The notes under the pieces were generated by a model, which was not told the DNA's origin, searched no databases, and saw nothing but the letters and a program-made list of their open reading frames with translations. A program made the translations under genes and the position numbers. This document shows, one piece after another, positions 30,484 to 63,729 of a stretch of 64,000 nt of DNA (positions within the stretch are counted from its first letter, which is position 1; every line of letters starts with the position of its first letter). The stretch spans positions 62,001 through 126,000 of the IMG/VR virus record IMGVR_UViG_3300046787_000286. One strand, written 5' to 3'.

Positions 30484-30486
30484 AGT

Positions 30487-32990: not shown

Positions 32991-32991
32991 A

Positions 32992-35723: not shown

Positions 35724-35746
35724 ATAAGTTCTCTCATGTAAAAGTT

Positions 35747-46551: not shown

Positions 46552-47154
46552 TCATGATGCATCTCGTTTACTAATCACAGTGTCGATCAAACCGTATGCT
46601 AGTGCTTGTTCAGCTGACATGAATGTATCACGATCCATATCCTTCTCAAACTCTGCATAAGTCTTGCCTGCACTGTTATGGCTAACATAGATTTCAGTCA
46701 GTCGCTTTTTCAAGTAGGTGATTTCTTTGTAAGAAATTTCAATGTCACTTTGCATACCACGTGCGCCACCGGAGGGTTGGTGAATCATGTGTCGTGCATT
46801 TGGTAACATTTTACGTTTGCCCGGTGCACCTGCTTGTGCCAGCAGTGAGCCCATTGAGCAGGCCTGTCCCATTACAATAGTTTGCACATCGGGACGAATA
46901 AACTGCATGGTATCATAAATTGCCATGCCAGCAGTTACTGAACCACCTGGGCTATTGATATACATGTAGATATCGCTTTTTGGATCTTCGCTTTCGAGAT
47001 ACAACATCTGGGCAACAATCAAGTTTGCCATCTGATCATGCACTTCGCCTTCTAGCAAAATAACACGATCACGAAGCAAGCGTGAATAGATATCGTAGCT
47101 ACGTTCGCCTTTGCTGGTTTGTTCCAGCACCATTGGGACTAATGCCATATTCAA
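46552..47154 (-). CDS. clpP: ClpP protease subunit
   Basis: [26 protein letters not shown]. Confidence 0.97.
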
Positions 47155-47574: not shown

Positions 47575-48153
47575 TCATTTTCGACCTATAACCATATATC
47601 TTGTGTACGTGGTTTCTGGGTCTTGTAAATCGATTTCCCCTTGATACAATACGTCATTCAACGGAAACTTTTTTAATATATCTTGTGTGCTATAAAACGG
47701 TGTGCGATCGACATTGTCGCGAGCTTGCATTACTACTAGAGTATCATCGGGAATGTTATCAAACCATTCGGTACCAGACATGTCTGTAAGGCTGTTGTTG
47801 ACCACAACGCTATCGGTATCAACTTGACGATAATCAAGTTTGTTCGCGTCCTGATTCATGTATTCTACATTTCGGGCACTAATATGATCCATCATGCGAC
47901 GACTTTGATCCAACATGCCTTTGTTAGTTTCGACGTTAATAAACTTGTTAACGTTTACTACAGGATCGAGAGTCATATACAGTGCAAGATTGCCATACCA
48001 CGATCCTAATATGTACATTGTAGAAATTTCTGGCTGCACCTTTGCTAATTCTTGCATCAACCAAACTTTACTTTTAGTTAAGTCGTGTGTGAAACTACCT
48101 TTAAGGCTGTGGCCACTAGACTCTGCTATTGCATAAAGTTCGTTGAGTATCAT
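47575..48153 (-). CDS. methyltransferase-fold protein with an N-terminal targeting-like peptide
   Basis: MILNELYAIAES leader; YILGSWYG, INVETN, VVVNNS. Confidence 0.6.
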   Translation of the reverse strand: MILNELYAIAESSGHSLKGSFTHDLTKSKVWLMQELAKVQPEISTMYILGSWYGNLALYMTLDPVVNVNKFINVETNKGMLDQSRRMMDHISARNVEYMNQDANKLDYRQVDTDSVVVNNSLTDMSGTEWFDNIPDDTLVVMQARDNVDRTPFYSTQDILKKFPLNDVLYQGEIDLQDPETTYTRYMVIGRK

Positions 48154-48162
48154 TACAACTAC

Positions 48163-51100
48163 TTAATCTTTTTTACTAGCCTCAATGGCAGCTAGGCGGC
48201 GTGCTAGGTCTGCAATATCAACTGGCTTAGACTTTTCTTGCTCTCTAGCTTTTTGTCCCATACGTTTGACCATGTCTTGATACTTGTTGCTGTAATTGGC
48301 TTCTTGCTCTTCGTCGTCGCCTTCGTGAACACGGTATGCTGATTGTGCTGCTTCTGGATCTTGGATTGCTTTTTTTGCAATTTTAGATGTTAAGTCGGCA
48401 TAGTAGCGTGGATCGGCATCACTCGCATTTGCCCTAGCAGCAGCGAATCGAGGATTTTGTTGTGATTGTGGAATAACAGGTTCTAGTACATTGTCACTTG
48501 GTTCAAACGATAATGCGTGTTGTCCGGACACTTTATCTGTAATAGAAGAATCGCCTTTGGTAATTCGTTGTGTCATTGCTGACATCGGATCAGCTTTAGG
48601 TGCTGCCAATTGTGTCGCGGTAGATTTCATGCTGGACTTAGCAGGTTGAGCTTTGGGGGTGGGCTTGTTTTTTGTCTTGGGTGCTGCTGGTTCAACAGTT
48701 GTTGTTGACACTGTTGTAGGGGCAACAGATGTATCAGCATCGGCAGCACTAGATTTTTTCTCCGATTTACGACCAGACATTGATGCAAGTTTCTTTTCCA
48801 GCTGACTATTAACATTTTGAAGTTGTCGTAGTCGTGAGCTCAGTGTTGAATTCTGATTTTCTAAGTCGCTGATCTCAGTGTTTTGTTCTTGGTCAATTTG
48901 ATCAATCTGTGCTAGCATTTGATCTTGCTTGCGTTCAGCTTGACGCATTTGATCAAACGCTTGCTGATCTTGATCTTGACTGCGCATAAAATCTTTAGCA
49001 AGTGCTTCAATCCCTGAGCCTGCTGTAGGGAAATCGGCTTTAGCACGACTAATTGCTCGTTGCAGGCCAACGTCTTTTACATCGGGCTCTGCTTCGCCGT
49101 CTTTTTTATCAGCTTCGACTACGCCTTGTTGTGGTACCATATTCGCCGCTGGCGCAGGTTGTGCGGCCATTCTACGTGCAACTTCTCTACGACCAACATA
49201 GTCACCGCTCTTGGGATCTGCCCAGCTTGGTGTAGCTGCTGGTTGTGCTGCCTGTTTTGTAGGTTGAGGGATGCCCGATGCATTAGCTGCGCCGCTATAA
49301 TTCCAGGCCGCTGCATTTGCCGGCATTTGACTTTTGACACTCGACGGAGATGTTGTGCTTGCAGCAGGGCGGCTAGTGGCAGCAGGTGTTGCAGTCATTG
49401 TTGGTTCGACTCTACCTTGTGGGCCAGTTTGTTGTGTAGGTATCTTCATAGAAGAATACACACTATTAATAACTTCTGGCGATACACCAGCGGCTACTAA
49501 TACTTGTCTGACTCCTTCTGAGTCCATTGGTTTTCTTGCTTTGTTCCAGGCTTGCAACAACTTGTCTAACGTAATCTTAGTTGTTAAGTTATGGCCTTTA
49601 GTTTGTGCCCAATTGCCTGCTTTGGCAGCAGCACCCTTAACTGAATCCCACATGCCTTCATTGAGTTTCTTTTGACCAGCAACCACTGAGTCAAACACCA
49701 TATAAATTTGACTTTCTTTTAACTTAGGTGCATTGAATTTCAAGAACCCAGGCTTCTCGGGATCATCTTTCCATCCTGGCATTAAGTTGCCGTCTTGGTC
49801 ATAAGGCACAGGTGATCCAGGATTCTTTGCTAACCAATCAGAATACTCTGCTGATGCTTTGACATTTTGTGTATTGATCTCTGCATTTTGTGCAGCAACG
49901 TCTGCATCAACCTTAGCATTGGCTCTATCCCAAGGATTGGTTTTAGAAGAAGCATAATCAACTTCGTTGCCCTTTGGTGTTATTGTTGGTCTATCGCTAG
50001 CATTGCCGCCCATTTTCATAAATTCTGAATCGGGCTTTAGCAGTGATGCACCATCGTCGAATGCAGGATCTTGTGGACGTCTCTCTCCGCCATCTGGGTC
50101 ATACATCGGAGCTTGATCAGCAGGAATTCTACCACTAGTTGGAACACTTGCTGTTCCACTTGACCCGCTAGGTGCGTTGTATTCTCCTGCACCAGGCAAG
50201 TTCCATTTTGCAGCTTGATTGCGGCTAATCTCACTTGGGGTGTATGCTCCACTCTTAACCTTATCCCATGTGTCGGCTGCTGTGCCTACACCGTCTGCAT
50301 AAGTTTGTGTTGGGCCCAAGCTGCCTGGCACATTTAATTTTTGTCCTGGTTGTAATACATCGGGGTTTGTGAGTTTTGTGCGAACATCATATGTTGGTTC
50401 AGATCCTGTGCCCGGAGGAACAGCATCGCCCATTGGGTTAATGTCAGTGAATGCATTTGGATCGTTCCAGGTTATACGATCACCAGTAGGAACAGTTTGA
50501 CCAGAGTTGGCGGCCATTAAATCTTTTACGCTAACACCATTCTTCTGAGCAATTTGACTTAGTGTGTCTCCCTTTTGCACAACATAATCAGTGCCGTCTG
50601 GTAATTTAGCAGGTGTACCAGTAGGAATTTGTGCATTCGGATTCTTGAAGTAATCAGCAATTGAATGAGCTGCCATTGCCAATGCGCCAGTTTTAGCGCC
50701 CTTGTATAGAGCAGAACTTGCTTTGTCACCTTGCAACAAACGATCTGTCATTTTTAACAGTCCAATTGCGCCAGCTCCGCCTAGCCCTGCGCCACTTAAC
50801 CCTGCGGCAGCAATTAGAGCAGCGTATACGGCGCTTTGAATATAAGGATGTTTTTTAGCAAAGTCACGATACTTGTTGACATATTGCATCACACCTTCGT
50901 CACCACCAGTTGCTGTTTTTAATTTAGCAGCAGCAGTGTCGTATAAATCATCAAATCCTTTAACTGGATGAGATTTCTGTATTTGGTCTTTTAGGCCTTC
51001 CCACGCTGCGTTGAGTTCTGATGCTTTATCAACGCCACGACCAGCTAATGTTCTGTTGTTGCCAGCTTGGGTAGCTGATTGTTCAACTCGTGAAAAAATG

Positions 51101-51807
51101 TCTTGAATTTGCTGAGGTGTTAAACGATACTCAACAAGTTGTGTACCTACTCGATTCCACTGTTCGTAGATCTGTTGGCGGTCTTCCTTAAGAAAGACAC
51201 TTTCATTTACTTTTTTTTTATTTTCTTGTTCTGCTTTCTTAGCAGCTTCACGCTTCTTGCGGAAGATTTCACGGAAGTAATCTTCATCGTCTGGGTTAAC
51301 ACCAGGTGTTTGTTGGCCACGATGTCTTGGCTTGGCTGGCGTATCACCTGGACGAGGATAATCGATTCCCGGTAAGTCGTATGGGCCACCTTCTGCTACA
51401 CTTTTTTTCTTGGCAGCATTCTTTTGACGCTCTTTTTCTAGCCTAGCATCGTCACGCTTGCTTTGCTTTTCTTGTTGTTCTTTGTCGTGGGCTCGACGCT
51501 CTTCGTCGCTCATGTCATTTAGCTCAGCACGTTTTTTATTGCCGGATCTAAATGATGCTGAAGCAGCACGGGCTTCTGACATACCTTGCTTGTGTAATTG
51601 CTTGTAAGCAGTGATTAAATCACTTTCAAAATCATCATCTATGAACTTATTACGGGCTACTGTGCGACCTAAATCTTTAACAACGATTTCCCACGCTGCA
51701 TCTAAAATATCATCATTGGACTGCAATCCTGCTGTTAATTTTTCTGCTACTTGTTCGTAGTAGTGGTGACTTGGGTTTGTGTTCTCATACAAGTTTGTGA
51801 TAATCAT
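48163..51807 (-). CDS. large probable virion-internal protein with Gly/Ala hydrophobic segment and LysM domain
   Basis: YVVQKGDTLSQIAQKNG...PDVLQPGQKLNVP; AALIAAAGLSGAGLGGAGAIG; many V/L-x-E sites. Confidence 0.7.
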   Translation of the reverse strand: MIITNLYENTNPSHHYYEQVAEKLTAGLQSNDDILDAAWEIVVKDLGRTVARNKFIDDDFESDLITAYKQLHKQGMSEARAASASFRSGNKKRAELNDMSDEERRAHDKEQQEKQSKRDDARLEKERQKNAAKKKSVAEGGPYDLPGIDYPRPGDTPAKPRHRGQQTPGVNPDDEDYFREIFRKKREAAKKAEQENKKKVNESVFLKEDRQQIYEQWNRVGTQLVEYRLTPQQIQDIFSRVEQSATQAGNNRTLAGRGVDKASELNAAWEGLKDQIQKSHPVKGFDDLYDTAAAKLKTATGGDEGVMQYVNKYRDFAKKHPYIQSAVYAALIAAAGLSGAGLGGAGAIGLLKMTDRLLQGDKASSALYKGAKTGALAMAAHSIADYFKNPNAQIPTGTPAKLPDGTDYVVQKGDTLSQIAQKNGVSVKDLMAANSGQTVPTGDRITWNDPNAFTDINPMGDAVPPGTGSEPTYDVRTKLTNPDVLQPGQKLNVPGSLGPTQTYADGVGTAADTWDKVKSGAYTPSEISRNQAAKWNLPGAGEYNAPSGSSGTASVPTSGRIPADQAPMYDPDGGERRPQDPAFDDGASLLKPDSEFMKMGGNASDRPTITPKGNEVDYASSKTNPWDRANAKVDADVAAQNAEINTQNVKASAEYSDWLAKNPGSPVPYDQDGNLMPGWKDDPEKPGFLKFNAPKLKESQIYMVFDSVVAGQKKLNEGMWDSVKGAAAKAGNWAQTKGHNLTTKITLDKLLQAWNKARKPMDSEGVRQVLVAAGVSPEVINSVYSSMKIPTQQTGPQGRVEPTMTATPAATSRPAASTTSPSSVKSQMPANAAAWNYSGAANASGIPQPTKQAAQPAATPSWADPKSGDYVGRREVARRMAAQPAPAANMVPQQGVVEADKKDGEAEPDVKDVGLQRAISRAKADFPTAGSGIEALAKDFMRSQDQDQQAFDQMRQAERKQDQMLAQIDQIDQEQNTEISDLENQNSTLSSRLRQLQNVNSQLEKKLASMSGRKSEKKSSAADADTSVAPTTVSTTTVEPAAPKTKNKPTPKAQPAKSSMKSTATQLAAPKADPMSAMTQRITKGDSSITDKVSGQHALSFEPSDNVLEPVIPQSQQNPRFAAARANASDADPRYYADLTSKIAKKAIQDPEAAQSAYRVHEGDDEEQEANYSNKYQDMVKRMGQKAREQEKSKPVDIADLARRLAAIEASKKD

Positions 51808-52655
51808 TATGCTTCCTCAATATAGTCTGCTGACTGGTCTGTTTTTTTACAATGTGCCATATACATTTCCATGGCCATACTAGCGTGATCTAAGTTTTTA
51901 AAGCGACTAGGCAAACGTCTGTTGCCGTGGCGAATTTCAAAGCCTGAACGTTCGTCGCCGTGAATTTCACAAATGCGACCATCTTCTAGTGCAATAGTTT
52001 TTACTGGGGCACTTGTTGCCGCAGCGTATGTGGGTTCTTGTATTGGTGCAACTGGTGTATCAGCAGCTGGTTCTGTCTCGGTTGGATCTTCGTCGAGTTC
52101 GTCTTGAACTGCTGAACCGGCAGCATGACCTGCAAGGCCAGCTAGCCCTCTTGTTACTGCACCTGCTCCGGCACCTGCTAATGCTCTGCCAGTTATAGCA
52201 CCTAGTGCAGGCAAAAACTCATCGAGTTGTTCTTCATCTAAATCGGGATTTTTAGAAATAATATCTTTGTCCGTAGCTTTTTTACCGATGTCACGATTCT
52301 TGGGCTTGTCTCCAATATCACGATCTTTCTTTTTAGCAACTGTGTCTTCGACTGAATCCAAGTAGTCAATAAAAGATTTTTTAACTTTATCTAACAACTT
52401 CTCTTCGTTGGCCACAGCCTCTTCGATTGATTCTTCGTTTTTTTCTTCTGACTCTGCGCCAACAAAGTAACCTTTGGTTACAGCAGGCTTGTCAGGATTG
52501 CCACCTAGTATAGGGCCACCTTTGCCTGGCTTGAATAGAGCAGGCAATTGATGCACTGACTTTTGTTGTGCATTTTGACTGCCACTAGGTTCAGCGGGAG
52601 TAATACGCCCTTCTAAAATAGCTAGTCTTTTGACTATGTCGTGCATGTTATTCAT
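51807..52655 (-). CDS. probable virion-internal protein
   Basis: AILEG, IEEA, LDEF, LDED, YIEEA motifs; Gly/Ala segment. Confidence 0.65.
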   Translation of the reverse strand: MNNMHDIVKRLAILEGRITPAEPSGSQNAQQKSVHQLPALFKPGKGGPILGGNPDKPAVTKGYFVGAESEEKNEESIEEAVANEEKLLDKVKKSFIDYLDSVEDTVAKKKDRDIGDKPKNRDIGKKATDKDIISKNPDLDEEQLDEFLPALGAITGRALAGAGAGAVTRGLAGLAGHAAGSAVQDELDEDPTETEPAADTPVAPIQEPTYAAATSAPVKTIALEDGRICEIHGDERSGFEIRHGNRRLPSRFKNLDHASMAMEMYMAHCKKTDQSADYIEEA

Positions 52656-52656
52656 A

Positions 52657-53100
52657 TTATGCTCTCTGATCTTTCAAGAAACTTCTCAACATCCAGCCGT
52701 GCTTGCCATGTGCGTCGATGCGTTCTGCTATAAAGTTAGCAATACCTTGTTGGTTTTCTTGTTCAGATACGGCAAATGTTTCGTTTAGAAGTTCGATCAT
52801 TTGTTCATTGTTGGCCAAAAGTTCTTCAATCATGAGTCGTGCGCGAGGAATCTTTGTTTGACCTGATATACGTGATAGTTCCATGAATCGTTCAAAACTA
52901 CCAGGAGCATAGTCATCTAGTGTACGAATGTATTCGGCTGTGCGGTCAATGGAGTTGTCATATACTTCTTCGTAGAGATCTCCGAAAAACTCGTGCAATT
53001 GTGCAAAGTCTGGCCCTTCTACATTCCAGTGAAACAACTGGGCCTTGATACTGAATGCATATTCAGTTGCTAATAGAGTTTTTAAACTGTCCGCGAGCAT
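52657..53100 (-). CDS. dps: Dps-family ferritin-like protein
   Basis: FHWNVEGPDF..LHEFF..LYE, D..AE.IR, HGWML. Confidence 0.9.
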   Translation of the reverse strand: MLADSLKTLLATEYAFSIKAQLFHWNVEGPDFAQLHEFFGDLYEEVYDNSIDRTAEYIRTLDDYAPGSFERFMELSRISGQTKIPRARLMIEELLANNEQMIELLNETFAVSEQENQQGIANFIAERIDAHGKHGWMLRSFLKDQRA

Positions 53101-53275
53101 TTTTATTCCTTTTATATTCCTTGGGCGTGTTAGGCGTAGGATCTGTAGTATATTTACCTGCCATTAAGTTTGCGCCATTTCTTGACACTATGCCCAACGA
53201 CGACTCTACTGGGGCCATGCCGCCAGCACAAGTGGCACCAACTGATGCAGATTCAACAATTTCACGCCATCTCAT
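53063..53275 (-). CDS. small protein with a targeting-like leader
   Basis: MRWREIVESA. Confidence 0.6.
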   Translation of the reverse strand: MRWREIVESASVGATCAGGMAPVESSLGIVSRNGANLMAGKYTTDPTPNTPKEYKRNKNARGQFKNSISN

Positions 53276-53558
53276 CTCTAATCCTTAGTAAATTACTGCC
53301 TTTGATATTAGCAGGGCCGTATTCTACACGCAAGTTTTCCATGCGCAAACTAGCTATTGCAGGTGGTACAAGTTCACAACGAATTGCGTATTTGCCTGCA
53401 GGCGCTTCGATTTGCAGCATTTCTTCTAGATATGCGTCAGTAAAATTAAATGTGCGCTCTGTAAAAAGTTCGTCGTTGACAAAAACACGATAGTCGGGCG
53501 CTTGCCCTGCCCACTCGCAATGCACATCAAATAAAACTTTAACAAAATGCCTAGTCAT
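53262..53558 (-). CDS. hypothetical protein
   Basis: late motif CTAAATA at 53564-53570. Confidence 0.7.
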   Translation of the reverse strand: MTRHFVKVLFDVHCEWAGQAPDYRVFVNDELFTERTFNFTDAYLEEMLQIEAPAGKYAIRCELVPPAIASLRMENLRVEYGPANIKGSNLLRIRDEMA

Positions 53559-53592
53559 GAATATATTTAGTTATTATGACAAAGGCGGTGAG

Positions 53593-53787
53593 TTACTTGA
53601 CTTGGCGGATACTTCCTATATGCCAGTCTTCTACTCCGTACTGTGCCTTCATTAGTTGTCGTGCTTGATTGGCATTGTTGGCAGTAACAGTAACGTCTAT
53701 ACGGCCAACATAGTTAGGGTGTTGAATACGAACAGATGCTGTCCATAGTAGGCTTTTTATCTTGGGTAAAACTTCTTTTGCTTTCAT
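53593..53787 (-). CDS. small protein (MKAKEVL start)
   Basis: overlap junction with the upstream gene; ANNANQARQLM motif resembles repeats in 55691-60649. Confidence 0.6.
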   Translation of the reverse strand: MKAKEVLPKIKSLLWTASVRIQHPNYVGRIDVTVTANNANQARQLMKAQYGVEDWHIGSIRQVK

Positions 53788-54188
53788 GTTACAGGGCCAC
53801 CTTCTACCCAGGCATCGCATGTTCGTTTTGCAGCACATTTAAACTTTAAAAATTTGCAATATCCCAATTGCCCAGCATCTATAGTATCGTGTGGATCCGA
53901 CCCAGGCTCTTCTCCAATGCCCTTGGCAATGCAATCTTGCATGTCTTCAGAGATGTCAAATGCTGCACAATTGCCACAACGATTTTGTTTTACTGATTCA
54001 ATATCATCTGTGTTCCATTTATCGGCAAGTTCTGCCCAGTACTCGTCGTTGGGCTCGTTGGGGTTAAGTGGGCCATAGTGATATTCGTCTATGGCCTTTT
54101 GACGATTTTTTAAATTTAGTTCAATGCTTTGTGTAGCAGGTGGACAGCCTTTTTCGATGGCTTCTAATAGATTAATAAAGTTTCTCAT
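53784..54188 (-). CDS. HiPIP-like Cys-rich protein
   Basis: CGNCAAF...GYCKF...TCDAW; leader MRNFINLLEA. Confidence 0.5.
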   Translation of the reverse strand: MRNFINLLEAIEKGCPPATQSIELNLKNRQKAIDEYHYGPLNPNEPNDEYWAELADKWNTDDIESVKQNRCGNCAAFDISEDMQDCIAKGIGEEPGSDPHDTIDAGQLGYCKFLKFKCAAKRTCDAWVEGGPVT

Positions 54189-55219
54189 TTTTTCTTCCCT
54201 GATTTCATGTTCGCGCACCAATGGTACATTCTAGCCTTTTCGCCTGACGCATTTTTAGCACGTTGACGTAAATCTGTAACTGATCCATTGCAACTAGCAC
54301 CTGCACGTTTTACACGTCCGGGGCGACTCTTGCCTTTGACTTTTCCATCTGCAAAGTTTTCTGCTACTGAGTTTGCTCTAGTTAATTTGTATCTAACTGC
54401 ATCACCATCGTCTTGGTGCTGGGCACTATATCCCCAAGCGGCCGCATATCGTTGAACTAGTCTGTTATATAACTTAGCACGACTTTCTGGATTTGGAACA
54501 GGATCGTCGGGTCCGTAGTATGTAGTTGGGTCAACTTCTTTACTGGCTGAAAAGATTAAGTTTTGGGGTTTGTATTTTTTAATGTATTTTTGTATAGCAG
54601 CTAATACAGTGGCAAATATTCTTTGTGCGTCACCTTCGCCTGTTACTTCTTGGCTGTTGTTTCTATGAAAGTCGACCTGTATAACTTCATTACCTTCGCC
54701 ATCGTATTCTTGATTGAACATGATGTTGAGATATGTGCCGTCTGGTAGTTTTGTATTTGCATCAACATCACCGTACTCTGACGTTTCCCATTTGGATTTG
54801 TAAGGTTGATCAAATGCTTCGTCTACGCTTTGTTTCACGGGTATGTTCTTGAGTGCAGCAGCGACACCTGGGTGCATCGGTGCAGGCCAATCGCCAGCTT
54901 CTACCCAGCAATAGTCTTGCCATTCTGGATTGGCACGTGGCTCAAACTCACTTGGTACCGTACCCAAGAATGTAACATACTTGGCGTTTTCGCCAATGCG
55001 CTTTAGCTTGATAGGTCCAGTGTATCCACCTTCTTCGGCTAGTTCTCTGCGAGCGCATTGCTCCAGTGATTCACCAGGCTCTCTGCCACCGCCCCATGCT
55101 GCCCATAGCCCGGGATCGTTAATATCGTTGCTACGCTGTTGCAAGCCATAACGACCCGTGTCTTCTGCGTAGAGCACAATGCCTGCGGCACCTTGGTCTG
55201 TAAATTCGTGTGCTCTCAT
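54185..55219 (-). CDS. Nudix hydrolase + two further domains
   Basis: Nudix box GGREPGESLEQCARRELAEEGG; VDEA and VAEN junctions. Confidence 0.85.
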   Translation of the reverse strand: MRAHEFTDQGAAGIVLYAEDTGRYGLQQRSNDINDPGLWAAWGGGREPGESLEQCARRELAEEGGYTGPIKLKRIGENAKYVTFLGTVPSEFEPRANPEWQDYCWVEAGDWPAPMHPGVAAALKNIPVKQSVDEAFDQPYKSKWETSEYGDVDANTKLPDGTYLNIMFNQEYDGEGNEVIQVDFHRNNSQEVTGEGDAQRIFATVLAAIQKYIKKYKPQNLIFSASKEVDPTTYYGPDDPVPNPESRAKLYNRLVQRYAAAWGYSAQHQDDGDAVRYKLTRANSVAENFADGKVKGKSRPGRVKRAGASCNGSVTDLRQRAKNASGEKARMYHWCANMKSGKKK

Positions 55220-55686
55220 ATTTTTTTAACTACCTTAATCTGTGCTTTTCTAGGATCGACAATTCTAACTTCTTGTTCGTGATGTTGCTGGGCAAAGTTA
55301 ACACCGTGATTGGTAATGTTATTAGGACCAACAGTGGCAGACAATATGTATGCGTGTGGCTGCTCATCTAAGTCCATGTCCATAGCCGCATACTCACCAG
55401 CTTCTGATTGCAAATATTCCTCAGCCGATTTTGGAGTTAAAGTCCAGTGCAATCCGGGCTGTTGTAGATTTGGCTGCTGGCCAGGGACTACCCAGATAGC
55501 ACGATATACTATACCACCTTGTGCTACTAACTTATCTACCGCAGCCATATACGCATCCAGTATTTGGTGTGCTTCTTTTTCGGAATCGTAATAGTCTGTT
55601 AGATAGGCAATTGCATCGACTATGCGCTCTGGCTCGTGCAGCGTATTCAGTTGAACATTTTCTACAACAAACTCGTTTGCTCTCAT
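55216..55686 (-). CDS. ADP-ribosyltransferase-like protein
   Basis: VYRA, GLHWT, EQEVR order fits the R-S/T-E ART fold; leader MRANEFVVE. Confidence 0.5.
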   Translation of the reverse strand: MRANEFVVENVQLNTLHEPERIVDAIAYLTDYYDSEKEAHQILDAYMAAVDKLVAQGGIVYRAIWVVPGQQPNLQQPGLHWTLTPKSAEEYLQSEAGEYAAMDMDLDEQPHAYILSATVGPNNITNHGVNFAQQHHEQEVRIVDPRKAQIKVVKKI

Positions 55687-55690
55687 AGTA

Positions 55691-58600
55691 TTATCCCATC
55701 TCCGGTACTACTGTAACACCATCTACTAGTTGTTGTGGATTCTGTGTTAGCCAAGCCATTGCAATACGGTTAGCATCGCTTTGAGCATTGCCGATACCGC
55801 CAAATCTATAAATCACTTGATTGTTGGGATTTAATATCAACCACTGTCCAGTAAATGATCCTGTGCCCGATGGATTGTAAGTTTGCCCAACCTGGCTACC
55901 TGTCGCAGGTTCGTTTGCTGTAGTAATGATGCCACCTTGTGCTGCATCGGCTCCAGACCCAATTGATTGAACTGTATAGTTATCACCCACAAAATCGTTA
56001 TCGTCGTAAAAATCGCCTGCTATGATAGCAGCTTCTTGGCGGTCGGGTGCATAAAACTGATGCACTAAACGATTAGTGCTGCCGTCTCGAATTTCCCAGT
56101 TAGGGGCTTGTTGTGAAACACTTTCGCGAGTTCTTACAACAAATTCAGCAGGATCGAGCCCTGTTTGTTGTATCCAAGCTCTTGCTTCGGTTTCGGCTGT
56201 TTGACGATCTGTGCTTGTGGGATTAAAGTAAACTTGGTTGTTGGCCATACTAGCAAGTTCCCACGGGCCCGGGCCATGTGGGATTAAATTGTTTACTCCA
56301 GACGATTGCTGTGCAGGTTCAATTTCGCGAACTTCGATATCGGTGCGCATGTTAGGACGCTCAGCACGTTGTTGTTCTATCCAAGATTCAGCAGCTTCTT
56401 GGCTTGGGAATCTATACAATGGTGGCGTTTCACCTCTTGAGTATGTGCCAGGCTGATTAGCAAAGCGGTCGTTTGCGTTGATCCAAATACCCCAGTTGCC
56501 TTGATTTTGTTGTGCCGGTGGTTGTGCAGTTGGTGTAATTTCGCCGGATGCTGATACTCTACCAACTTCTTGACCTTGCGGGTTTCTAACAACAACATCA
56601 ACATCACGGCGTTGTGCCCAATATTGTGCTCTTTGCAATGCTGTCTGATCATTGCCATACTCATCACCTGCAATCAGTCCACCGCCTGTGGTAGTTATTC
56701 TGTAAGTCCCGCCACCTTGTGGTGTGGGTTCAGCACGACCGTGTCCATACATAGCATTGATGTTGCTGTTGGGGTTCTCTTGTTTCCATTGCTGTAATAC
56801 GCCGTATGCGTCTGCATAATCAGAAGCATTAAATCTATAGAAGATCTCATTGGTATCACCATTCTTCAAATACCAATCGCCATCGGGATTGTTTGGACGG
56901 CCTGCTACTGTTGTGCCTTGCGTCTGTGGCTTCTCTTCGTATGGACGAAGTGGCTCAGCAGTCATGCTGTTGATTGCAGTAGGACCTGGTGCAAGTCCCC
57001 ACTCTCGTGCGGCTGTTGTTTTAGCTTCGCTTTCATTGTCAGCAACAACTTCCATACGCTGGCCGTTGTATTTTACATTCCACCACATCTTGCCGGTGTT
57101 TTCGCCCTTGGCCACTTTGCGTTGTAATTGTGCTTGTCTAAGGAAACTCTTTAGTGCAGCCTTGGGCATTTCGCCAGCAGCATAACGACTAAAGATATTC
57201 AACAAGTCTTTATCACCCGGAGTTGCGATCTTATTAGGTGTGATGCTATATTCAGACTGAGTTGAATCGGCTGGCAAGTTTGCTTTAACTTTTTCCCATG
57301 CTTCCTTGGCAGTTTTTGCTTCAACGTTGGTCTTGAACGCAGGCATTTGTCTGCGAGTATCTTTGTCCCACACAGTAGCATTGGATGTAACAGTCCATTC
57401 TACTTCGCCAGTCTTTCCTCTACGTGATCCTATGTCACCAGTTAATACTTTGTAGAGTTTCTTTTGATACTCTTCCTTATACTTGTTAGGATCCATAGCA
57501 GCATCCATTGCCACAACCATACGATTGATTGTGTCCTGCATCTTTTTAGGATTTTCGGCAATGTCAGTTAGGTAGTCGCCACCCGGGGAACGGAACTCAA
57601 TACGATTGTCCTTGGTATTGATACTGGTGAACTTGTCTGTGACGCCAGAGTGTAATATCTTAGATGCCGCAGCGTCAAGGTGAGACTTCATCTTGTCTAA
57701 CAACTCTTTGGCTTTTTCTGGCTTGTCTCTTGCTAATTGCTTAACTTTTTCAATAGCAGGTTTAGCGTATGAGTTTCCAATACGATCAAACTGGCGTAAT
57801 ACGTGTTCGTCGCCTAGTAATAATGCAGCCTTTAAGTAATCTAGTTTGTCAAGATCGTAGCCTGGAATTGAAATGTTTGTGTGCATACTAGTCTTGTTGT
57901 TCTTGCCGGTATACACGCCATTGTCAGCGGCCCAGGCTTGTACCTTTTTCATTACTGTGCCAATATCTTCTAGAGGGATAGGCGGACTTACAAATTCCAA
58001 TCCAGTGTCGCCCTCGTTATCAGGAGTGTCTAAACTGCCGTCCGGTTCGATAGTAAAGCAATCGTCTGGCTTGTTGCTGCCAACCGATACCCACCCGTTG
58101 CCCACCCACTTTTTATAGCCACCGCCGTAGCCGTGGTAGTTAGAGCTGTATGCTACACTATCCATGCCCATGGCATTCATAAAGTCTAACGCAACATTTT
58201 CAATATCGCCTGCTGAGTCACTGCTGCTGGTATAATACGGCCAGACCACATTACCGTAATTGCCTTCGACGTCAGACGCATAACTAATGCTAATACTGTC
58301 TAGCCAGTCACTTTCAGAGTACTCGTCTCTTTTTTCGGCTTCAAATTCTTCCTGGGCATAGTCATAACTGCGACCTTGTGCTTCCCAAGTCTCTACATAG
58401 TATTCTGCGTTGATTTCGCGTAACTTTTCTGCTACTAACTCTCCAAACTCTTCTGATGTAGGGTCTAGATCAGGGTAATCGGCCTTTACTTCATCTTCGG
58501 CTCGTTCTTGGTAGTCCTCAGGATCAAAAGGTTCTTCACGGTCTAAGTATTCCTGGAAGAACTCAAAACCGTTGTTGTGCCAGTCTTGATCTATTTGTTC

Positions 58601-60649
58601 CGTTTGCCAGTCAAAGTAATCAGATTCCATTTGCTCACGAAGTCTGCGGATTTCATTGCGTCCGTTGTAATCACCATCATCAAAAAAGTTCACAGCATCA
58701 TCAATATCACGAACACGCTCGTCCTGATCGTAGTCAGGTTCCTGGTCGCGGTCTTCATCGTTGCTTACGTTGGGAACATACATTTCAAACTCTAAACCAA
58801 CTTTAGCACCTTTGATATCTTTGGCTAGATTAGCCAAGTTTTTAGAAGTCATCTTGACTTCAAACAAGTCTTGTTCCTTGAATGCTTGTAACTCTTCAGC
58901 CAGTGCCTTGTTTAAATGCTTGCCTGTAACATCTTCCCCGCCTTCAACATCAGGATCTAGATCATGTGTTTTTAATCCAAGACGTTTGAATTGTTTTAGA
59001 TAGCCTTGTTCAGCTTCGTCTGATGGAAAAGTAATAACTGTTTGCGGTGGCCCTTGATTGTAGTCCTTTGGATCAGCATCATCCATGTCTGAAATATCCA
59101 TGCCCAGTCTATACCAATCAGTTAAGTCGGTAACATCTACTTTGGTTGTGCCTGCTGGCATCTGTGGCTCAAACTCTGGCCCCGTAGCTTCTTGATTTCC
59201 GAGCTCGTCTTCTTGCTCGCCGGGTGCTTGACTTAATGGAGTTGAATTGTAACCATAACTCTTTTTAGCAGTGGCTTCCTGTAAGTTTGCTGACTTGATC
59301 AACAACTCTGGCTTGCCTTGCTTGTCTGTTTTAAGAGCCATCTTGTTGGCTTCTTTGCCTGTTTGACCAGGATGCACATCCACAGTTAGTGCCATATTGA
59401 AACGTGGATCTTTTGCTTGGGCTCGAGTAGGAATATATCCTGATGCTTCGTTAACAGCTACATCTTCGAAGTATTCTGGGTGCATGCCTGCATAGTCACG
59501 CATTAACACACCAGCACGGGCATTTGCTTCGTTTTCATAGGCAGAACCTGTTTCGCCTGCATCCAGGGGCATAGATTCTGTTTCGTCTTGTTTGCGATGA
59601 GTAAGTTCGTGTGCTAGGGTGCGCAATATGTCCATGATATGACGGTTGCCTAGAGCTACTATTAATTCACCTGTAGCTGCATCGTAACGACCAAAACTCT
59701 TGTTGCGAATTGACCACTCGGGATCTTTCTTGAGGCGCAACTTTGGAACATTGTCGATTTCTAATTCTTCAACAGCAAAGTTTAAAAAATCTCTAATAAT
59801 CTCTTCTTGTGTAGGGGTAGGCTTCTCACTCAAGAACATTCTAGTACTAGCACCGACTCCGTCTGGGGTAGCAGTGGCATCTTCGGCCACGTGCTTGTAT
59901 CCGTAAATAAAAGGCTTTTTAACTTTAACTTTGTTTTGTTCTGCTAAACTCAGTTCAGCATCTCTTGCAGCGGCCTTTGCATCGTATAACTTTGTGATGT
60001 AACCTTGTGTGCGCAACATTTTGTAAGCAAGATTCTCTGGGCCTAGTTCTCCGTGTGCATCTAGGCCTGCTTGGCGATATGTTTTGATCTTTCGAGCTAG
60101 ACTATCAATACGCTCCATGTCGTTGCTTTTTACAGCATCGTCAATTCTGTGCTTAAAATCTTCGTACTTGCTGCGAACTGCATCGTCATCTACTGTGGAC
60201 TTGCGATATCTAGGAATGTTGATCCAGTCGTTGTTTAGTACAGAGAACACACCTTGGCTTACTGGAGGCTTGTTTGCATTTTCTACATACAACTCTACAT
60301 CATAACCGCCAATTTTGATATTGTGCAAGTCGTTATATTGATATTTCTTTGCGTCAAACAATTCACGATAAACATCATCAGAGTCTGCTTGTGGAATATC
60401 AACCACTAGGTGTAAGTCGATGTCTGAATATGGTGTATATGTGTAGCCTGCATTTGATCCTGATACAGTTATGTCTTTTACTTCTAAATCAGAAAGTCCC
60501 AGGAACTCTTTGAAATCGGCAGCAATTTCAAGTAACTTGTCACGTACTTCAGGGCGCATCTGTTCTTTTTGCCACAGGCGTGGGTTCAACTGTTTGTTGA
60601 ATTTAACTGCATCAGCAAGGTTATAGGAATCAAGTTCTTGTAAGTTCAT
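55691..60649 (-). CDS. 1652-aa polyvalent protein: Pol-beta NTase + HExxH metallopeptidase + amidoligase + C-terminal repeats
   Basis: SGSNAGY...SDIDLH; LAHELTH; GLEFEM, EPDGSL, LEFVSPP, SMHTNIS, RIEFRSPG; about 8 short A-x3-EA repeats; late motif at 60675-60681. Confidence 0.8.
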   Translation of the reverse strand: MNLQELDSYNLADAVKFNKQLNPRLWQKEQMRPEVRDKLLEIAADFKEFLGLSDLEVKDITVSGSNAGYTYTPYSDIDLHLVVDIPQADSDDVYRELFDAKKYQYNDLHNIKIGGYDVELYVENANKPPVSQGVFSVLNNDWINIPRYRKSTVDDDAVRSKYEDFKHRIDDAVKSNDMERIDSLARKIKTYRQAGLDAHGELGPENLAYKMLRTQGYITKLYDAKAAARDAELSLAEQNKVKVKKPFIYGYKHVAEDATATPDGVGASTRMFLSEKPTPTQEEIIRDFLNFAVEELEIDNVPKLRLKKDPEWSIRNKSFGRYDAATGELIVALGNRHIMDILRTLAHELTHRKQDETESMPLDAGETGSAYENEANARAGVLMRDYAGMHPEYFEDVAVNEASGYIPTRAQAKDPRFNMALTVDVHPGQTGKEANKMALKTDKQGKPELLIKSANLQEATAKKSYGYNSTPLSQAPGEQEDELGNQEATGPEFEPQMPAGTTKVDVTDLTDWYRLGMDISDMDDADPKDYNQGPPQTVITFPSDEAEQGYLKQFKRLGLKTHDLDPDVEGGEDVTGKHLNKALAEELQAFKEQDLFEVKMTSKNLANLAKDIKGAKVGLEFEMYVPNVSNDEDRDQEPDYDQDERVRDIDDAVNFFDDGDYNGRNEIRRLREQMESDYFDWQTEQIDQDWHNNGFEFFQEYLDREEPFDPEDYQERAEDEVKADYPDLDPTSEEFGELVAEKLREINAEYYVETWEAQGRSYDYAQEEFEAEKRDEYSESDWLDSISISYASDVEGNYGNVVWPYYTSSSDSAGDIENVALDFMNAMGMDSVAYSSNYHGYGGGYKKWVGNGWVSVGSNKPDDCFTIEPDGSLDTPDNEGDTGLEFVSPPIPLEDIGTVMKKVQAWAADNGVYTGKNNKTSMHTNISIPGYDLDKLDYLKAALLLGDEHVLRQFDRIGNSYAKPAIEKVKQLARDKPEKAKELLDKMKSHLDAAASKILHSGVTDKFTSINTKDNRIEFRSPGGDYLTDIAENPKKMQDTINRMVVAMDAAMDPNKYKEEYQKKLYKVLTGDIGSRRGKTGEVEWTVTSNATVWDKDTRRQMPAFKTNVEAKTAKEAWEKVKANLPADSTQSEYSITPNKIATPGDKDLLNIFSRYAAGEMPKAALKSFLRQAQLQRKVAKGENTGKMWWNVKYNGQRMEVVADNESEAKTTAAREWGLAPGPTAINSMTAEPLRPYEEKPQTQGTTVAGRPNNPDGDWYLKNGDTNEIFYRFNASDYADAYGVLQQWKQENPNSNINAMYGHGRAEPTPQGGGTYRITTTGGGLIAGDEYGNDQTALQRAQYWAQRRDVDVVVRNPQGQEVGRVSASGEITPTAQPPAQQNQGNWGIWINANDRFANQPGTYSRGETPPLYRFPSQEAAESWIEQQRAERPNMRTDIEVREIEPAQQSSGVNNLIPHGPGPWELASMANNQVYFNPTSTDRQTAETEARAWIQQTGLDPAEFVVRTRESVSQQAPNWEIRDGSTNRLVHQFYAPDRQEAAIIAGDFYDDNDFVGDNYTVQSIGSGADAAQGGIITTANEPATGSQVGQTYNPSGTGSFTGQWLILNPNNQVIYRFGGIGNAQSDANRIAMAWLTQNPQQLVDGVTVVPEMG

Positions 60650-60717
60650 AGGTATATATTAGAATATCAACTTGTATTTATTCATAGCATAGTTTACAGG
60701 ATATAGATGCTGAAGTC

Positions 60718-60742
60718 AAAAAAAAGCCCCTTGCGGGGCTTT
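60718..60742 (-). terminator. intrinsic terminator
   Basis: AAGCCCC-GCAA-GGGGCTT-TTTTT. Confidence 0.85.
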
Positions 60743-60744
60743 AG

Positions 60745-61674
60745 TTATGCTTCCTTCTTCAAGGACTTGCCTTTAACAGGAGCAGGAGGTTCTGCTGGTG
60801 CACCACTTGTGGCAACCACTTGTGGCGTAGGGGATGAATTAACCGGTAACGTATATTGAGTTGTTGCTTGTCCTGCTGCATCTACAGGTGCAACCGGTGC
60901 ATTAGCCAGGGCCATTGCATGCAATTCACGATACACGTTTTCTTGTGCTTGATAGTCAAACACATAAGTGCCTGTGTGACGCAATAACACACGCTTGTCT
61001 ACCCATACTTTACCACCAACATCGCGCCAGTTTTCGCAGAAGCTCCAGTCTTCTGAGTAGTAACGATTTTCACGCACACCTGTGTCAAAGTAGGTTTTCA
61101 TATGAGGATCCAAGTCTGCTGACAATCCAATGTCGTTCTTGAACGATTTAACATTGGGATGCGAGTTCATCTTTTCAAACACATGCTTCTTGATTAACAA
61201 GAAACCTGTACCTGTTTTAGTAACTTCTTGTAGGCCTTCTGGGCCTTCTTCTGCACCTTCGAATCCGTTAACACACCATTTGATTGGCAAGGATTTCATT
61301 GGGTATAAGCCACCAATAACATCAACGTCGCGATTCAACAATACCAACAAGTGCCATGGTTCCCAGCCAATGTCTGCATCAATAAACATCAAGTGAGTTG
61401 AGTCTGGGTTTGTTAAGAACTTGGCTGTTAGTGTATTACGAGCACGAGTAATTAGCGACTCGTTTGTCATTGTTTCCATGGTCCATTCGATACCCAATTG
61501 ACGAGCGGTGTTACTCCATTTAATAAAGCTCATAAAGGTAGATTCAGTAAGCATGCCGCCGTAGCATGGCATACAAATATGAACACGGGTAGTACGTAGA
61601 TAATCTACATTGACTTGAATTTGTTGTTGCCCAGGTGCTGCTGGGGCTTCGGTTGTGGGTTGGTTATCAGCCAT
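60745..61674 (-). CDS. GT-A glycosyltransferase-like protein
   Basis: CMPCYGG, ESLITRARN, FIDADI, GTGFLLI, SEDWSFC; late motif TTAAATA at 61701. Confidence 0.75.
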   Translation of the reverse strand: MADNQPTTEAPAAPGQQQIQVNVDYLRTTRVHICMPCYGGMLTESTFMSFIKWSNTARQLGIEWTMETMTNESLITRARNTLTAKFLTNPDSTHLMFIDADIGWEPWHLLVLLNRDVDVIGGLYPMKSLPIKWCVNGFEGAEEGPEGLQEVTKTGTGFLLIKKHVFEKMNSHPNVKSFKNDIGLSADLDPHMKTYFDTGVRENRYYSEDWSFCENWRDVGGKVWVDKRVLLRHTGTYVFDYQAQENVYRELHAMALANAPVAPVDAAGQATTQYTLPVNSSPTPQVVATSGAPAEPPAPVKGKSLKKEA

Positions 61675-61725
61675 TGTTTCCTCTTAAGTATTAAGTGAAA
61701 TATTTAAGAGGAATTTACTAGTGGC

Positions 61726-63729
61726 TTATTTTTTCTCGTCTACGTAGTCTTCGTCAACGGATTGTTGCACAGGGCTTGTGCCCAAAACGGTTGCATTTTT
61801 ACTATCGGCCCAGGCGTGTGCAGCTTCAGCTGATGGGAACGTCTTGCGCCACATCACACGTTGGTCACGGCGGTCGTAAACATAACCATATGCTTCCACT
61901 GGTCCTGCTTCCTCTGCTACTTGTTCTGGTTTGAATTCCAAAGCACCTTGTGTATTGCCCATAATGATATTGGCAATCTTGTAGATGTTGTCAAACGTCA
62001 AATCAAAGTGACGCTCAAACGGATGTCCTTTTAGTAAACTAAATGTAGTAAGTAGTTTACCTTTTATTTGTCCGGTAAGGCCGCCTCCGGTATACTTGCC
62101 AACTTGAATACTACCGCGTGTGCTTACTGCACCTTTGTTACGTCCACCCGCTCTAGTCTCATAGTATGAGTAAAGCATTGTTGGGCCATACTCCATTGGG
62201 TCGTGTGGAACAAAGCGGGCTTTGATTGTTGTCTTTACAACGTTTTCTACACAGTCGAAGTCTTTGGCTACAATTTGTTTTACTTGTTCAATGAATTCGG
62301 GCCATGGAATAAACTTACGTGATCCACCACCTTCATCCGGAACAAATTCGGTTAAGTGGGCTTCGTTCATTTTACCATCACTACTAAATCCATAATATTT
62401 CGCTACATCTTGTAAATCACTAGGACGGTACTTGTTGAGAAAGTCTGATATTAAATCGTGGATGTGTCCGGAGTTCCCTGCTTGGTCTAATGCACCGGGC
62501 AAAGGTATTTCACCATATTTCCATCTAATATGCACACCACCAGGACTGTCTATGTACCAACGTCTTCCGTCCCAGTCTAAACCAAATTTATCTACTGTTA
62601 CTTTTAGTTGTATGTCTTTGGCCGGAGTACCTGGCACAGTCTCGCACCATATGTCAAATTGATTGTTGCGTAGATATCTTGATTTGTATGGCTTGCCGAA
62701 GTTTGGCGGCACATATCTGTCTCCATCATCGCCATTACCTGGAGCGAACTCGTTTAGTTGGTCAGCTAGTTGTTCTTCACTCCAGCCAATGTAGCTATCA
62801 CTATCATCGTCGCCGATACGCATAACATACGCACCGCCTTCCTCGCTTTCAAGCTCGCCAATTTCCCAACCGACTTTGGCTAAGGCTTGTTCTACTCGAC
62901 GTTGTGTAGCTACATCTGGGGCAGAATACCACATTTTAGCAAATCGAAGTAACACATCTTCGGGGTCATTTTCTCTGTCGTTACCACTGCCGGGTGCAAA
63001 TTCGTTTAGTTCTTCATCTTCAGTCATGCTAAAGTCCTTCTTCATGAAGTCCTTGGTTCTAGACACTGCTGGCTGTATTTTTTTAAGTTTAGGTGGCTTG
63101 CTTCTAAACATCACAGAACCTAGCATATTACTTTCGTCTAGCGTGGTACCCATGGCTGCGTCTAGCATTTTAACAACAGTAGCAGCAAGTTTAGGATTTA
63201 TTTGTGTTTTTGGGTACAAACTCATTACAAGAGCTGTCTTACGTCTAGTATCCAATGTGGGCCATGCTGTGCGTATTTCTGTAGCACTAGTCATACCAGG
63301 ACCAAACTCCACTGTGGGCAAGTAAGCCATGTAAGCATGCTTATTCATCGGAGCAAGTTCATCTTGTCCTTCATAAGGTTGCAAGTATGCAGGGTTGCCA
63401 TCTTTTTTAACGCCGCCTGCTTGTGGTGGTTTGTTTGCGTCCTTTTCCGAACGTACAAAAATTAATTGGGTGGTTTCGGGATCAAAGTGATCTGTAACTT
63501 CTCGTGCTTGAAACGGTGACTTAACTTGTATGAATTTACCAGGATTAACGCCTGCTAGTTTAGCAAGTTTTTCTTTAACAGCAAACGGGAATGGTCTAGC
63601 GGATGTGTCGTTGGTTGCAGCCACATAGACATCTGCGCCGGGGAAAGCATCTTGTGCTTGTTGGTATAGTGCGTAATGGCCAGCGTGGAACGGATGAAAT
63701 CCGCCTGGCATGATAATAACTTGCTTCAT
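61726..63729 (-). CDS. HIGH-motif cytidylyltransferase-family domain + modular C-terminal segments
   Basis: PGGFHPFHAGH, SATEIR; three L(N/T)EF(A/V)P-headed segments; late motif CTAAATA at 63736. Confidence 0.75.
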   Translation of the reverse strand: MKQVIIMPGGFHPFHAGHYALYQQAQDAFPGADVYVAATNDTSARPFPFAVKEKLAKLAGVNPGKFIQVKSPFQAREVTDHFDPETTQLIFVRSEKDANKPPQAGGVKKDGNPAYLQPYEGQDELAPMNKHAYMAYLPTVEFGPGMTSATEIRTAWPTLDTRRKTALVMSLYPKTQINPKLAATVVKMLDAAMGTTLDESNMLGSVMFRSKPPKLKKIQPAVSRTKDFMKKDFSMTEDEELNEFAPGSGNDRENDPEDVLLRFAKMWYSAPDVATQRRVEQALAKVGWEIGELESEEGGAYVMRIGDDDSDSYIGWSEEQLADQLNEFAPGNGDDGDRYVPPNFGKPYKSRYLRNNQFDIWCETVPGTPAKDIQLKVTVDKFGLDWDGRRWYIDSPGGVHIRWKYGEIPLPGALDQAGNSGHIHDLISDFLNKYRPSDLQDVAKYYGFSSDGKMNEAHLTEFVPDEGGGSRKFIPWPEFIEQVKQIVAKDFDCVENVVKTTIKARFVPHDPMEYGPTMLYSYYETRAGGRNKGAVSTRGSIQVGKYTGGGLTGQIKGKLLTTFSLLKGHPFERHFDLTFDNIYKIANIIMGNTQGALEFKPEQVAEEAGPVEAYGYVYDRRDQRVMWRKTFPSAEAAHAWADSKNATVLGTSPVQQSVDEDYVDEKK

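Follow-up and report, generated by a model that had tools for sequence, protein, structure and literature searches.

Background

Phage proteins that are injected into the host are hard to spot from sequence, and to our knowledge capsid targeting sequences (CTSs) have been experimentally defined for T-even phages only. In T4, gp21 cuts behind L/I-x-E; residues 4 and 7 of the CTS target the protein, and residues 8 and 10 direct its processing (PMC9026906). In the T4 record, ipII and ipIII start with MKTYQEFIAE↓A (the arrow marks a known or predicted cut), and ipI starts with MKTFKEFT and is cut later, at ITE↓A. Polyvalent proteins have been predicted to be packaged along with the DNA and to be delivered with it, and a zincin-like domain has been proposed as their autoprocessing hub (PMC5512222). 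In the present study, we examined a 64,000-nucleotide stretch of the IMG/VR virus record IMGVR_UViG_3300046787_000286 (hereafter, the window), and in it a block of genes at positions 47575-63729, many of whose products have short N-terminal leaders or Glu-containing joints.

A sequence-only reading of the window had proposed that the block encodes capsid-targeted proteins and polyproteins with CTS-like leaders and (V/L/I)-x-E cleavage punctuation. We compared the block with related loci from uncultured phages, and examined the leaders, the joints, and a small C-terminal module. With moderate confidence, we favor the interpretation that the block consists of head-cargo genes, representing a T4-like system on a larger scale.

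Methods

The window corresponds to positions 62001-126000 of the 214,006-bp contig IMGVR_UViG_3300046787_000286 (= Ga0485269_000016), which comes from a freshwater/lake metagenome. The contig was read over positions 45-193 kb (148 kb) by stepwise look-ups. Coordinates are those of the window unless the contig or another locus (L and a number) is named. For the set of relatives, IMG/VR was searched with the Nudix protein of the block, and 79 loci were taken, with the window's own contig excluded. A scan for head proteases seeded with the proteins of T4 and of Rak2-like phage K64-1, in which a T4 gp21 homologue is present, gave mostly other lineages; a profile seeded with L095 found an abundant clade.

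N-terminal leaders

All of the eight N-termini quoted in the sequence-only reading were found, on the minus strand: MRAHEFT (start at 55219), MRANEFVVE (55686), MRWREIVE (53275), MRNFINLLE (54188), MKAKEVL (53787), MILNELYAIAE (48153), MIITNLYE (51807), and MNLQELD (60649). MRNFINLLE and MKAKEVL begin at internal ATGs within longer, mechanically defined open reading frames (ORFs), and their relatives begin at the same points. The start M-[RK]-x-x-E-[FIVL] opens 4 of 13 block genes vs 1 of about 45 genes elsewhere in the window (Fisher p=0.007). Among the 79 related loci, it opens 198 of 3721 distinct ORFs, whereas the counts were only 2, 4, and 6 when the Glu was moved by one register in either direction. 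The most frequent forms are MRAQEF, MRASEF, MRAHEF, MRATEF, MRAKEF, and MRANEF, usually followed by [IVL]-x-E, and the consensus in the clade is M-R-A-x-E-F-[IVL]-x-E. Loci near the head proteases of other phage lineages had at most one leader-type start each, and the first 50 kb of Sinorhizobium phage Phosso, the closest isolate, contained a single leader-like start.

The leader codons vary synonymously (AGA/CGA, GCA/GCC/GCT, GAA/GAG, and TTT/TTC); therefore, selection acts on the leader peptide and not on the DNA. The pattern of a T4-type CTS propeptide, which is short and N-terminal with an aromatic targeting residue and an end in [L/I]-x-E, fits the products of the genes at 55216-55686, 53063-53275, 53784-54188, and 47575-48153. 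As judged from sequence comparison, these results support the leaders as real and as one family that resembles the T4 CTS, occurring far above chance.

The contig carries a second cluster of leader genes some 10 kb upstream, at about 134.5-139.1 kb (L249:5436-10019), where it adjoins a GH19-like gene and a membrane-protein gene. Its members start with MRAAEFIVE, MRAQEFLTE, and MRSHEFLDE, and include a 646-amino-acid (aa) protein that starts with MRFDEINE and carries a C-terminal DUF6321. The block is thus only part of the set, and the leader phenomenon spans a large uncultured clade.

Joints between domains

The 17 x-x-E motifs that had been quoted as cleavage punctuation all occur in the block proteins. 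The expected enrichment of x-x-E did not appear: the block proteins contain 75 [VILM]-x-E sites vs 70.6 ± 7.0 in shuffled sequences. Under the refuting condition that the sequence-only reading itself had set (no enrichment), the general claim would fail. The punctuation claim holds for a subset of sites that is supported by position; for many of the 17, the support is their presence.

Comparison with relatives supports E134 and E287 of the 344-aa Nudix protein, E256 and E401 of a 1652-aa protein, and the leader ends of the 156-, 134-, 70-, 192-, and 282-aa proteins. The domain that begins with AFDQPY and lies behind VDE134 here is found elsewhere behind the leaders MRAHEFIAE↓, MRASEFITE↓, or MKIKEIISE↓, and in other genomes behind internal joints. 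Likewise, the domain that begins with ASGYIP, behind VNE401 here, is preceded by a leader or by an internal joint, depending on the genome. The SSG[HY]SL start of the 192-aa protein stands behind either the IAE↓ of the leader or the LDE↓ of an upstream domain (in relatives, [IL]AE↓SSGYSL and LDE↓SSGYSL, respectively). The aliphatic-x-Glu motif is kept at residues 7-9 in the 134-aa family and at residues 13-15 in the 282-aa family. In the case of the 1652-aa protein, each domain is found elsewhere as its own gene with a leader-type N-terminus. Domain shuffling among the genomes is extreme. At the level of sequence, this pattern supports the view that the leader ends and a subset of the internal x-x-E motifs would be interchangeable forms of a single joint, constrained in position and with the same P3/P1 preference as T4 gp21.

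The predicted structures point in the same direction. In the AlphaFold2 model of the 344-aa protein, the predicted local distance difference test score (pLDDT) falls below 50 in three stretches only (residues 1-7, 129-135, and 284-298), namely the leader and the two joints. The 1652-aa protein has 14 [VILM]-x-E sites within residues 1-1100, and 7 of them fall within segments of pLDDT<50 that account for 17.5% of this chain (binomial p=0.0055); an eighth site, E585, has such a segment on either side. Taken together, all Glu residues are unenriched there (20 of 97). The models thus support the location of the joints in what would be disordered linkers.

The basic C-terminal module

The C-terminus of the 344-aa Nudix protein consists of a basic module of 57 residues (54188-54358, minus strand), which is always preceded by x-x-E and is predicted by AlphaFold2 to form three short helices. 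More than 592 IMG/VR stretches carry it at 80-92% identity. When 1.84 billion representative proteins were searched with a profile, there were 1054 module matches at E<=1e-10, nearly all at the extreme C-terminus, and the module-bearing protein clusters number more than 1000, mostly short (median length, 210 aa). In the 57 distinct contexts before the module, P1 is Glu in all 57 and P3 is V/I/M/L in 82%, whereas P2, P4, and P5 are aliphatic in merely about 9-10%. Similarly, in the best 150 module matches, P1 is Glu in 147 of 147 and P3 is V, L, I, or M in 83%, vs 5-8% at P2, P4, and P5; 84 of the 138 Met-starting proteins among these 150 also open with a leader. In some relatives, the module is fused to LysM and a GH19-like lysozyme (L056).

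The module has no Pfam family, no match in GenBank phages by tblastn, and no relative in the PDB by sequence search. Nor does it score as a member of DUF6321 (PF19846), to which it has no Pfam match and which Atlas gives as a weak lead; true DUF6321 proteins are present in L238 and in the 646-aa leader protein of the contig.

A diverged paralogue of the module (L003:9779-10660 and L012:10001-10960) lacks both cysteines and keeps the E↓NFADG start and an HW..NM motif. Elsewhere, only a short E↓NFADG remnant of the module is present and serves as a linker ahead of further joints (L004:9983-11029; also L024, L025, L032, and L034). This use as a linker suggests that NFADG is a favored sequence C-terminal of the cut.

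Protease and capsid genes in relatives

Proteases with 56-66% identity to the gp21 homologue of L095 are encoded by at least 600 viral contigs, many of which share samples with module-bearing contigs. In L238, the order of genes is portal, acidic scaffold, protease, gp22-like scaffold, and capsid, the last with a predicted maturation site, HLME↓TAT; the scaffold genes lie at L238:8856-9905 and L238:11154-12257, and the protease gene at L238:9920-10558. Six of six capsid contexts show L-x-E↓[ST]A. Downstream in L238 are leader genes (MRAHEILAE and MKINEIICE) and a DUF6934-like gene, and homologues of the leader genes (49-64% identity) occur in module-bearing loci that show synteny with the window. 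The guanine-plus-cytosine content of L238 is 41.7%, vs 42.4% for the window.

Two isolates provide a further link through the DUF6934-like domain of the Nudix precursor. Its homologue in Pseudomonas phage PA5oct (EST35_0349) is annotated as a structural protein from electrospray ionization tandem mass spectrometry (ESI-MS/MS). In the T4-type Vibrio phage nt-1 (ORF252), a DUF6934-like domain lies behind NLTE↓, and a neighboring gene starts with MIEFLTE↓.

Genes of the block

The block contains 14 tightly packed genes, on the minus strand throughout. The gene at 61726-63729 encodes a 667-aa multi-domain protein without a leader, whose N-terminal domain (residues 1-199) is cytidylyltransferase/NMNAT-like, with a weak match to Pfam CTP_transf_like. 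Its joints are LDE199, LNE243↓FAPG, LNE327↓FAPG, LTE461↓FVPD, and VAE606, and the homology blocks in its relatives end at 199-202 and span 241-334 and 318-469. The LNE↓FAP linker is also present in L004, L014, L048, and L053, and some relatives have an extra leader (e.g., MRLRELFE).

The 1652-aa polyvalent precursor (55691-60649) matches Pfam Amidoligase_2 (1.3e-7) and NTP_transf_2 (1.3e-3). It consists of a Pol-beta nucleotidyltransferase (NTase) at residues 14-233, a linker at 234-275 with three sites (LAE237, VAE256, and LSE275), an HExxH domain at 276-399, VNE401, a small ASGYIPT domain, LQE458, a small domain at about 500-565, a linker with LAE585 and LFE597, an amidoligase-containing domain at 598-1073, and small degenerate repeats. 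Maribacter and Synechococcus phages have the NTase as a protein of its own, and the fold predicted for it matches those of CdnE and ANT enzymes. The HExxH motif lies near residue 345, where the match to Pfam Tox-MPTase3 is not significant (E=0.15), and a fold search of this part against the PDB gave no match. The repeats, about eight copies of W-x-aliphatic ... A-x-x-W at residues 1084-1650 or so (55691-57400), were seen by eye and not by BLAST. They were also seen at the C-terminus of the product of 61726-63729 and in 53593-53787.

The 344-aa precursor (54185-55219) has the MRAHEF leader, a Nudix domain at residues 8-128 (Pfam NUDIX, 4.5e-16), VDE134, a DUF6934-like domain at 135-283, VAE287, and the basic module. 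The DUF6934-like domain scores 20.8-22.1 bits against Pfam DUF6934 (PF22028), for which the cutoff is 27, and matches PHROGs 16075 and 6387 at 1e-11 and 1e-8; thus, it is a relative of DUF6934 and not a member by Pfam's rule. A sequence search against the PDB gave no match to it, and a fold search located it in a number of Atu_ph07 proteins with multiple domains. Both the 1652-aa protein (NTase, HExxH, and Amidoligase_2) and the 344-aa protein (Nudix, DUF6934-like, and the module) have the architecture of polyvalent proteins, with at least two unrelated effector-type domains in a single chain.

The gene at 48163-51807 encodes a 1214-aa low-complexity protein with a LysM domain (Pfam, 5.8e-12) and the start MIITNLYE↓N. 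Its homology blocks at residues 15-78 and 205-537 end at MSE78 and begin just past VNE202, respectively. The motif that makes up the leader of the 282-aa protein (HDIVKRLAILEG.., 51807-51860) recurs at the C-terminus of this protein (DIADLARRLAAIEA.., 48163-48220). The 282-aa protein (51807-52655) has an alternative 15-residue leader ending in ILE15↓G and a Gly-rich hydrophobic segment, and the leader motif DI-x-x-I-x-x-RLA-x-[IV]-E is kept in 11 relatives.

Among the smaller genes, 60745-61674 encodes a 309-aa protein of phrog_1574 (PHROG E=7.9e-39) without a leader. Its homologue adjoins the capsid gene on an ordinary T4-like contig (L113), and the protein is probably not cargo. The 156-aa protein (55216-55686) has the canonical 9-residue leader MRANEFVVE↓N and no Pfam or PHROG family; the Atlas language model gives a lead to the ADP-ribosyltransferase clan, which is only a lead. 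The 134-aa Cys-rich protein (53784-54188; leader, MRNFINLLE↓A) is 84-92% identical in L009, L063, L064, and L069, with [LIV]-x-E↓A at 7-9 kept, and in L006 its domain is fused downstream of an NMNAT-like protein. The 64-aa protein (53593-53787), which the Joint Genome Institute also calls as a gene of this length, starts with MKAKEVL, a leader without the second Glu; its relatives start with MKA[KR]EI or MRAKEI, and the member in L017 with MRAQEFITE↓S. It resembles one unit of the W-x-aliphatic ... A-x-x-W repeats and matches DpnD/PcfM weakly (E=0.15). The 98-aa conserved protein (53262-53558) and the 147-aa Dps/ferritin-like protein (52657-53100; Pfam Ferritin 1.7e-22, PHROG 3636) have no leader. 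The 192-aa protein (47575-48153) has the 11-residue leader MILNELYAIAE↓SSG and a match to Pfam Methyltransf_25 (E=0.0065) that is below the cutoff.

The 70-aa protein (53063-53275) has the leader MRWREIVE↓S, and the mature N-terminus of its family resembles the predicted capsid maturation site. In this 66-70-aa family, the mature N-terminus E↓TASAGATGSGSIATV.. (L063:4168-4368) aligns in register with the capsid sequence HLME↓TATTGATAVGNVATL.. (L238:12280-12700). By BLASTP against the capsid site and N-arm, the L063 member gave E=3e-5, and the window member is too diverged to align.

Of the enzyme identities listed in the sequence-only reading, Nudix, NTase, amidoligase, and Dps were borne out; the ADP-ribosyltransferase-like call is a lead only, and the methyltransferase and the HExxH peptidase are weak. 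The Nudix, Dps, and LysM assignments are firm, and those of the amidoligase and the NTase are supported.

Genomic setting and expression signals

The family-B DNA polymerase encoded at 43153-45816 is 52% identical to that of Phosso, 46% to that of Atu_ph07, and about 43% to those of the 121Q/GAP32 group of jumbo myoviruses, distant relatives of T4. A nucleotide search of the block against 50,697 GenBank phage records gave no match. The region of the contig read contains replication, chaperone, lysis, and many small genes in addition to the second leader cluster. The contig is probably a partial genome, because the large relatives measure 320-370 kb vs 214 kb here.

The block is flanked by a ClpP gene at 46552-47154. 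A 747-aa ClpA/B-like ATPase and a DnaJ homologue are encoded just past the right end of the window (L168:5661-8742), so that the cargo block has a chaperone and protease set around it. Within the block there is one good intrinsic-terminator-like hairpin with a T run (60723-60742, minus strand), which separates the polyprotein operon from the two genes upstream of it.

The TAAATA motifs that had been taken as late signals are present upstream of four block genes (starts at 63729, 61674, 60649, and 53558), but they are not specific to the block. In the related loci, TAAATA stands upstream of 27% of leader ORFs vs 23.5% of non-leader ORFs; being equally common before non-leader ORFs, it does not support late timing and was ruled out as a block-specific late promoter. 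Sigma-70-like sites showed no enrichment, and a search for RNA runs listed none that contained the stretch.

Elsewhere in the window, 31 tRNA genes in a dense array and a transfer-messenger-RNA-like gene (13405-13850) occupy 224-15194 on the minus strand. An NAD synthase gene lies at 19814-20602; together with the NMNAT-like and Nudix genes, it gives the phage several NAD-related functions. Sugar-nucleotide genes at 22991-37000 encode a thiamine pyrophosphate enzyme, a DegT-type aminotransferase, and two epimerase/dehydratases. On the contig, at about 54-62 kb and 154-164 kb (L255 and L251), are genes for RNA polymerase omega-like, RF-1-domain, and IF1-like proteins, superoxide dismutase, AhpC, and PhoH.

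Interpretation

If the block encodes head cargo, the leader would act as a CTS that tethers each protein to the scaffolding core of the prohead, with variants on the 134-, 192-, and 282-aa proteins. A prohead protease of the gp21 family would then cut behind the Glu of [VILM]-x-E, trimming the leader and splitting the precursors at exposed linkers. The pieces set free would be the Nudix, NTase, HExxH, amidoligase, and DUF6934-like domains and the basic module, the three helices of which would probably remain with the DNA. These pieces would be retained once the head is full and would presumably reach the host together with the DNA. What we infer from the data above is the binding to the scaffold, the cleavage as such, packaging, injection, and the targets of the enzymes; the "first strike" role, in particular, is suggested by analogy with T4 IPI and Alt.

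Several observations weigh against this interpretation. The density of [VILM]-x-E is 14.2 per 1000 residues in the block vs 16.1 in the other proteins of the window. The Nudix, 64-aa, and 1652-aa proteins have only the first half of the leader, without the second Glu, and the Dps, 309-aa, 98-aa, and 667-aa proteins have none. The block sits between replication and chaperone genes, outside any head module. Searches with the head proteins of T4 and L238 found no portal, protease, or capsid gene on the contig at 45-193 kb, nor in the window and the related loci, so that the link to the protease comes from relatives. TAAATA also precedes the DNA polymerase gene and others. Finally, the LysM domain of the 1214-aa protein and the Gly-rich hydrophobic segments of the 1214- and 282-aa proteins would also suit roles in the envelope.

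These last features speak for regarding the proteins as exported envelope, lysis, or superinfection-exclusion factors with the leader as an export signal, as do the joining of the module to LysM and lysozyme in L056 and the GH19 gene beside the second leader cluster. However, the leader is short, charged, and acidic, without the hydrophobic core of Sec/Tat signals, and the cargo consists mostly of cytoplasmic-type enzymes (Nudix, NTase, amidoligase, and GNAT), and we consider export very unlikely. The lack of overall enrichment counts in favor of another explanation, in which nothing is cleaved or targeted, the joints being flexible linkers or recombination joints and the leader serving the translation start context, folding, or chaperone recognition. 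Extreme domain shuffling between genomes and the NFADG remnants that serve as linkers would agree with it, and processing itself is deduced. Nevertheless, a linker does not need an invariant Glu with an aliphatic residue exactly two positions before it while P2 and P4 are free. In addition, the synonymous leader codons indicate that the DNA is not the conserved entity, and the likeness to the T4 CTS covers the residues for both targeting and processing. An explanation by uncleaved linkers is therefore unlikely in our judgment.

It is also conceivable that the joints are genuinely cut, but in the cytoplasm, by the HExxH domain or the phage Clp, and that the products act in the infected cell without being packaged. 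An HExxH domain is contained in the 1652-aa protein itself, and zincin-like peptidases have been proposed as autoprocessing hubs (PMC5512222); ClpP, the ClpA/B-like ATPase, and DnaJ flank the block; and no head genes are found on the contig at 45-193 kb. On the other hand, more than 1000 mostly short module-bearing clusters share the joint, so that an enzyme acting in trans is needed. The P3/P1 preference is of the gp21 type, with the same site in the capsid protein of the clade, whereas Clp proteases are processive and have no defined cut sites, and the peptidase match of the HExxH domain is the insignificant one (E=0.15) given above. Cytoplasmic processing thus appears quite unlikely to us.

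Beyond the assignment of the block as head cargo, we tentatively put forward, as possible rather than probable, a general protein-loading system in this clade. It would combine the short leader, the protease motif, and the 57-residue basic tag on more than 1000 unrelated cargo families, making any domain a head-packaged, DNA-associated, and host-delivered effector. The more than 1000 families with the signature point to a large undescribed set of putative virion-loaded proteins. If so, the whole injected effector set of a phage could be read from its genome alone through the leader/joint signature, and the leader, [VILM]-x-E, and the module together would flag candidate virion-delivered enzymes, in the hundreds to thousands, among the abundant phages of lakes and give a catalogue of candidate counter-defense and host-takeover effectors. 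It would also mean that a double-stranded DNA phage uses polyprotein-style precursors matured by the head protease, that the module is a new, highly conserved small basic head protein, and that natural portable parts are available to load foreign proteins into phage heads.

Comparison with known systems

In the literature, we found no paper describing this leader/joint/module system, and none on the function of DUF6321 or DUF6934 or on CTSs in metagenomic phages. T4 IPI, IPII, and IPIII gave nothing better than E=5 by tblastn against the window and the related loci.

The homologues of the DUF6934-like domain in PA5oct (EST35_0349) and nt-1 (ORF252) are 26-32% identical to that of the Nudix precursor; unlike the latter, they stand alone or are otherwise fused, and they lack the basic module. 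Polyvalent proteins (Iyer et al. 2017, PMC5512222) resemble the large precursors in having unrelated effector-type domains in series, including a Pol-beta NTase and an HExxH peptidase-like domain. However, that study defines neither a cleavage motif nor a leader and omits amidoligase, whereas the present clade conserves explicit joints and a leader.

In phiKZ, 201phi2-1, and SPN3US, many head proteins are cut behind the Glu of a three-residue motif by a gp21 homologue (PMC9026906, PMC5694885), and their redundant propeptide sites recall the three sites in the 234-275 linker of the 1652-aa protein. In contrast to the clade studied here, these phages use S/A-x-E or A-x-E, their propeptides are mostly longer than 100 residues, and neither a shared short leader family nor a common C-terminal module has been described for them.

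The closest likeness in the leader is to the T4 internal proteins (IPs) and Alt. In both systems, diverse and unrelated mature parts share only a propeptide of about 10 residues ending in [L/I]-x-E. In the leader of the clade, the Phe, the aliphatic residue, and the final Glu are spaced as in T4 (an E-F-[IVL]-x-E core), and relatives in the lineage encode a gp21-family protease and a capsid protein with a predicted cleavage site. The leader of the clade differs from that of T4 in being one residue shorter, in beginning with MRA and not MKT, and in having mostly Val at P3. The clade, whose members are uncultured freshwater jumbo phages, further differs in having a conserved basic C-terminal module and precursors that reach 1652 aa and contain several internal joints, a feature undescribed for the T4 IPs. 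Compared with these known systems, what is new here is the variant of the leader, the internal joints for polyprotein-like precursors, the ubiquitous basic module, and the scale on which they occur in uncultured freshwater phages.

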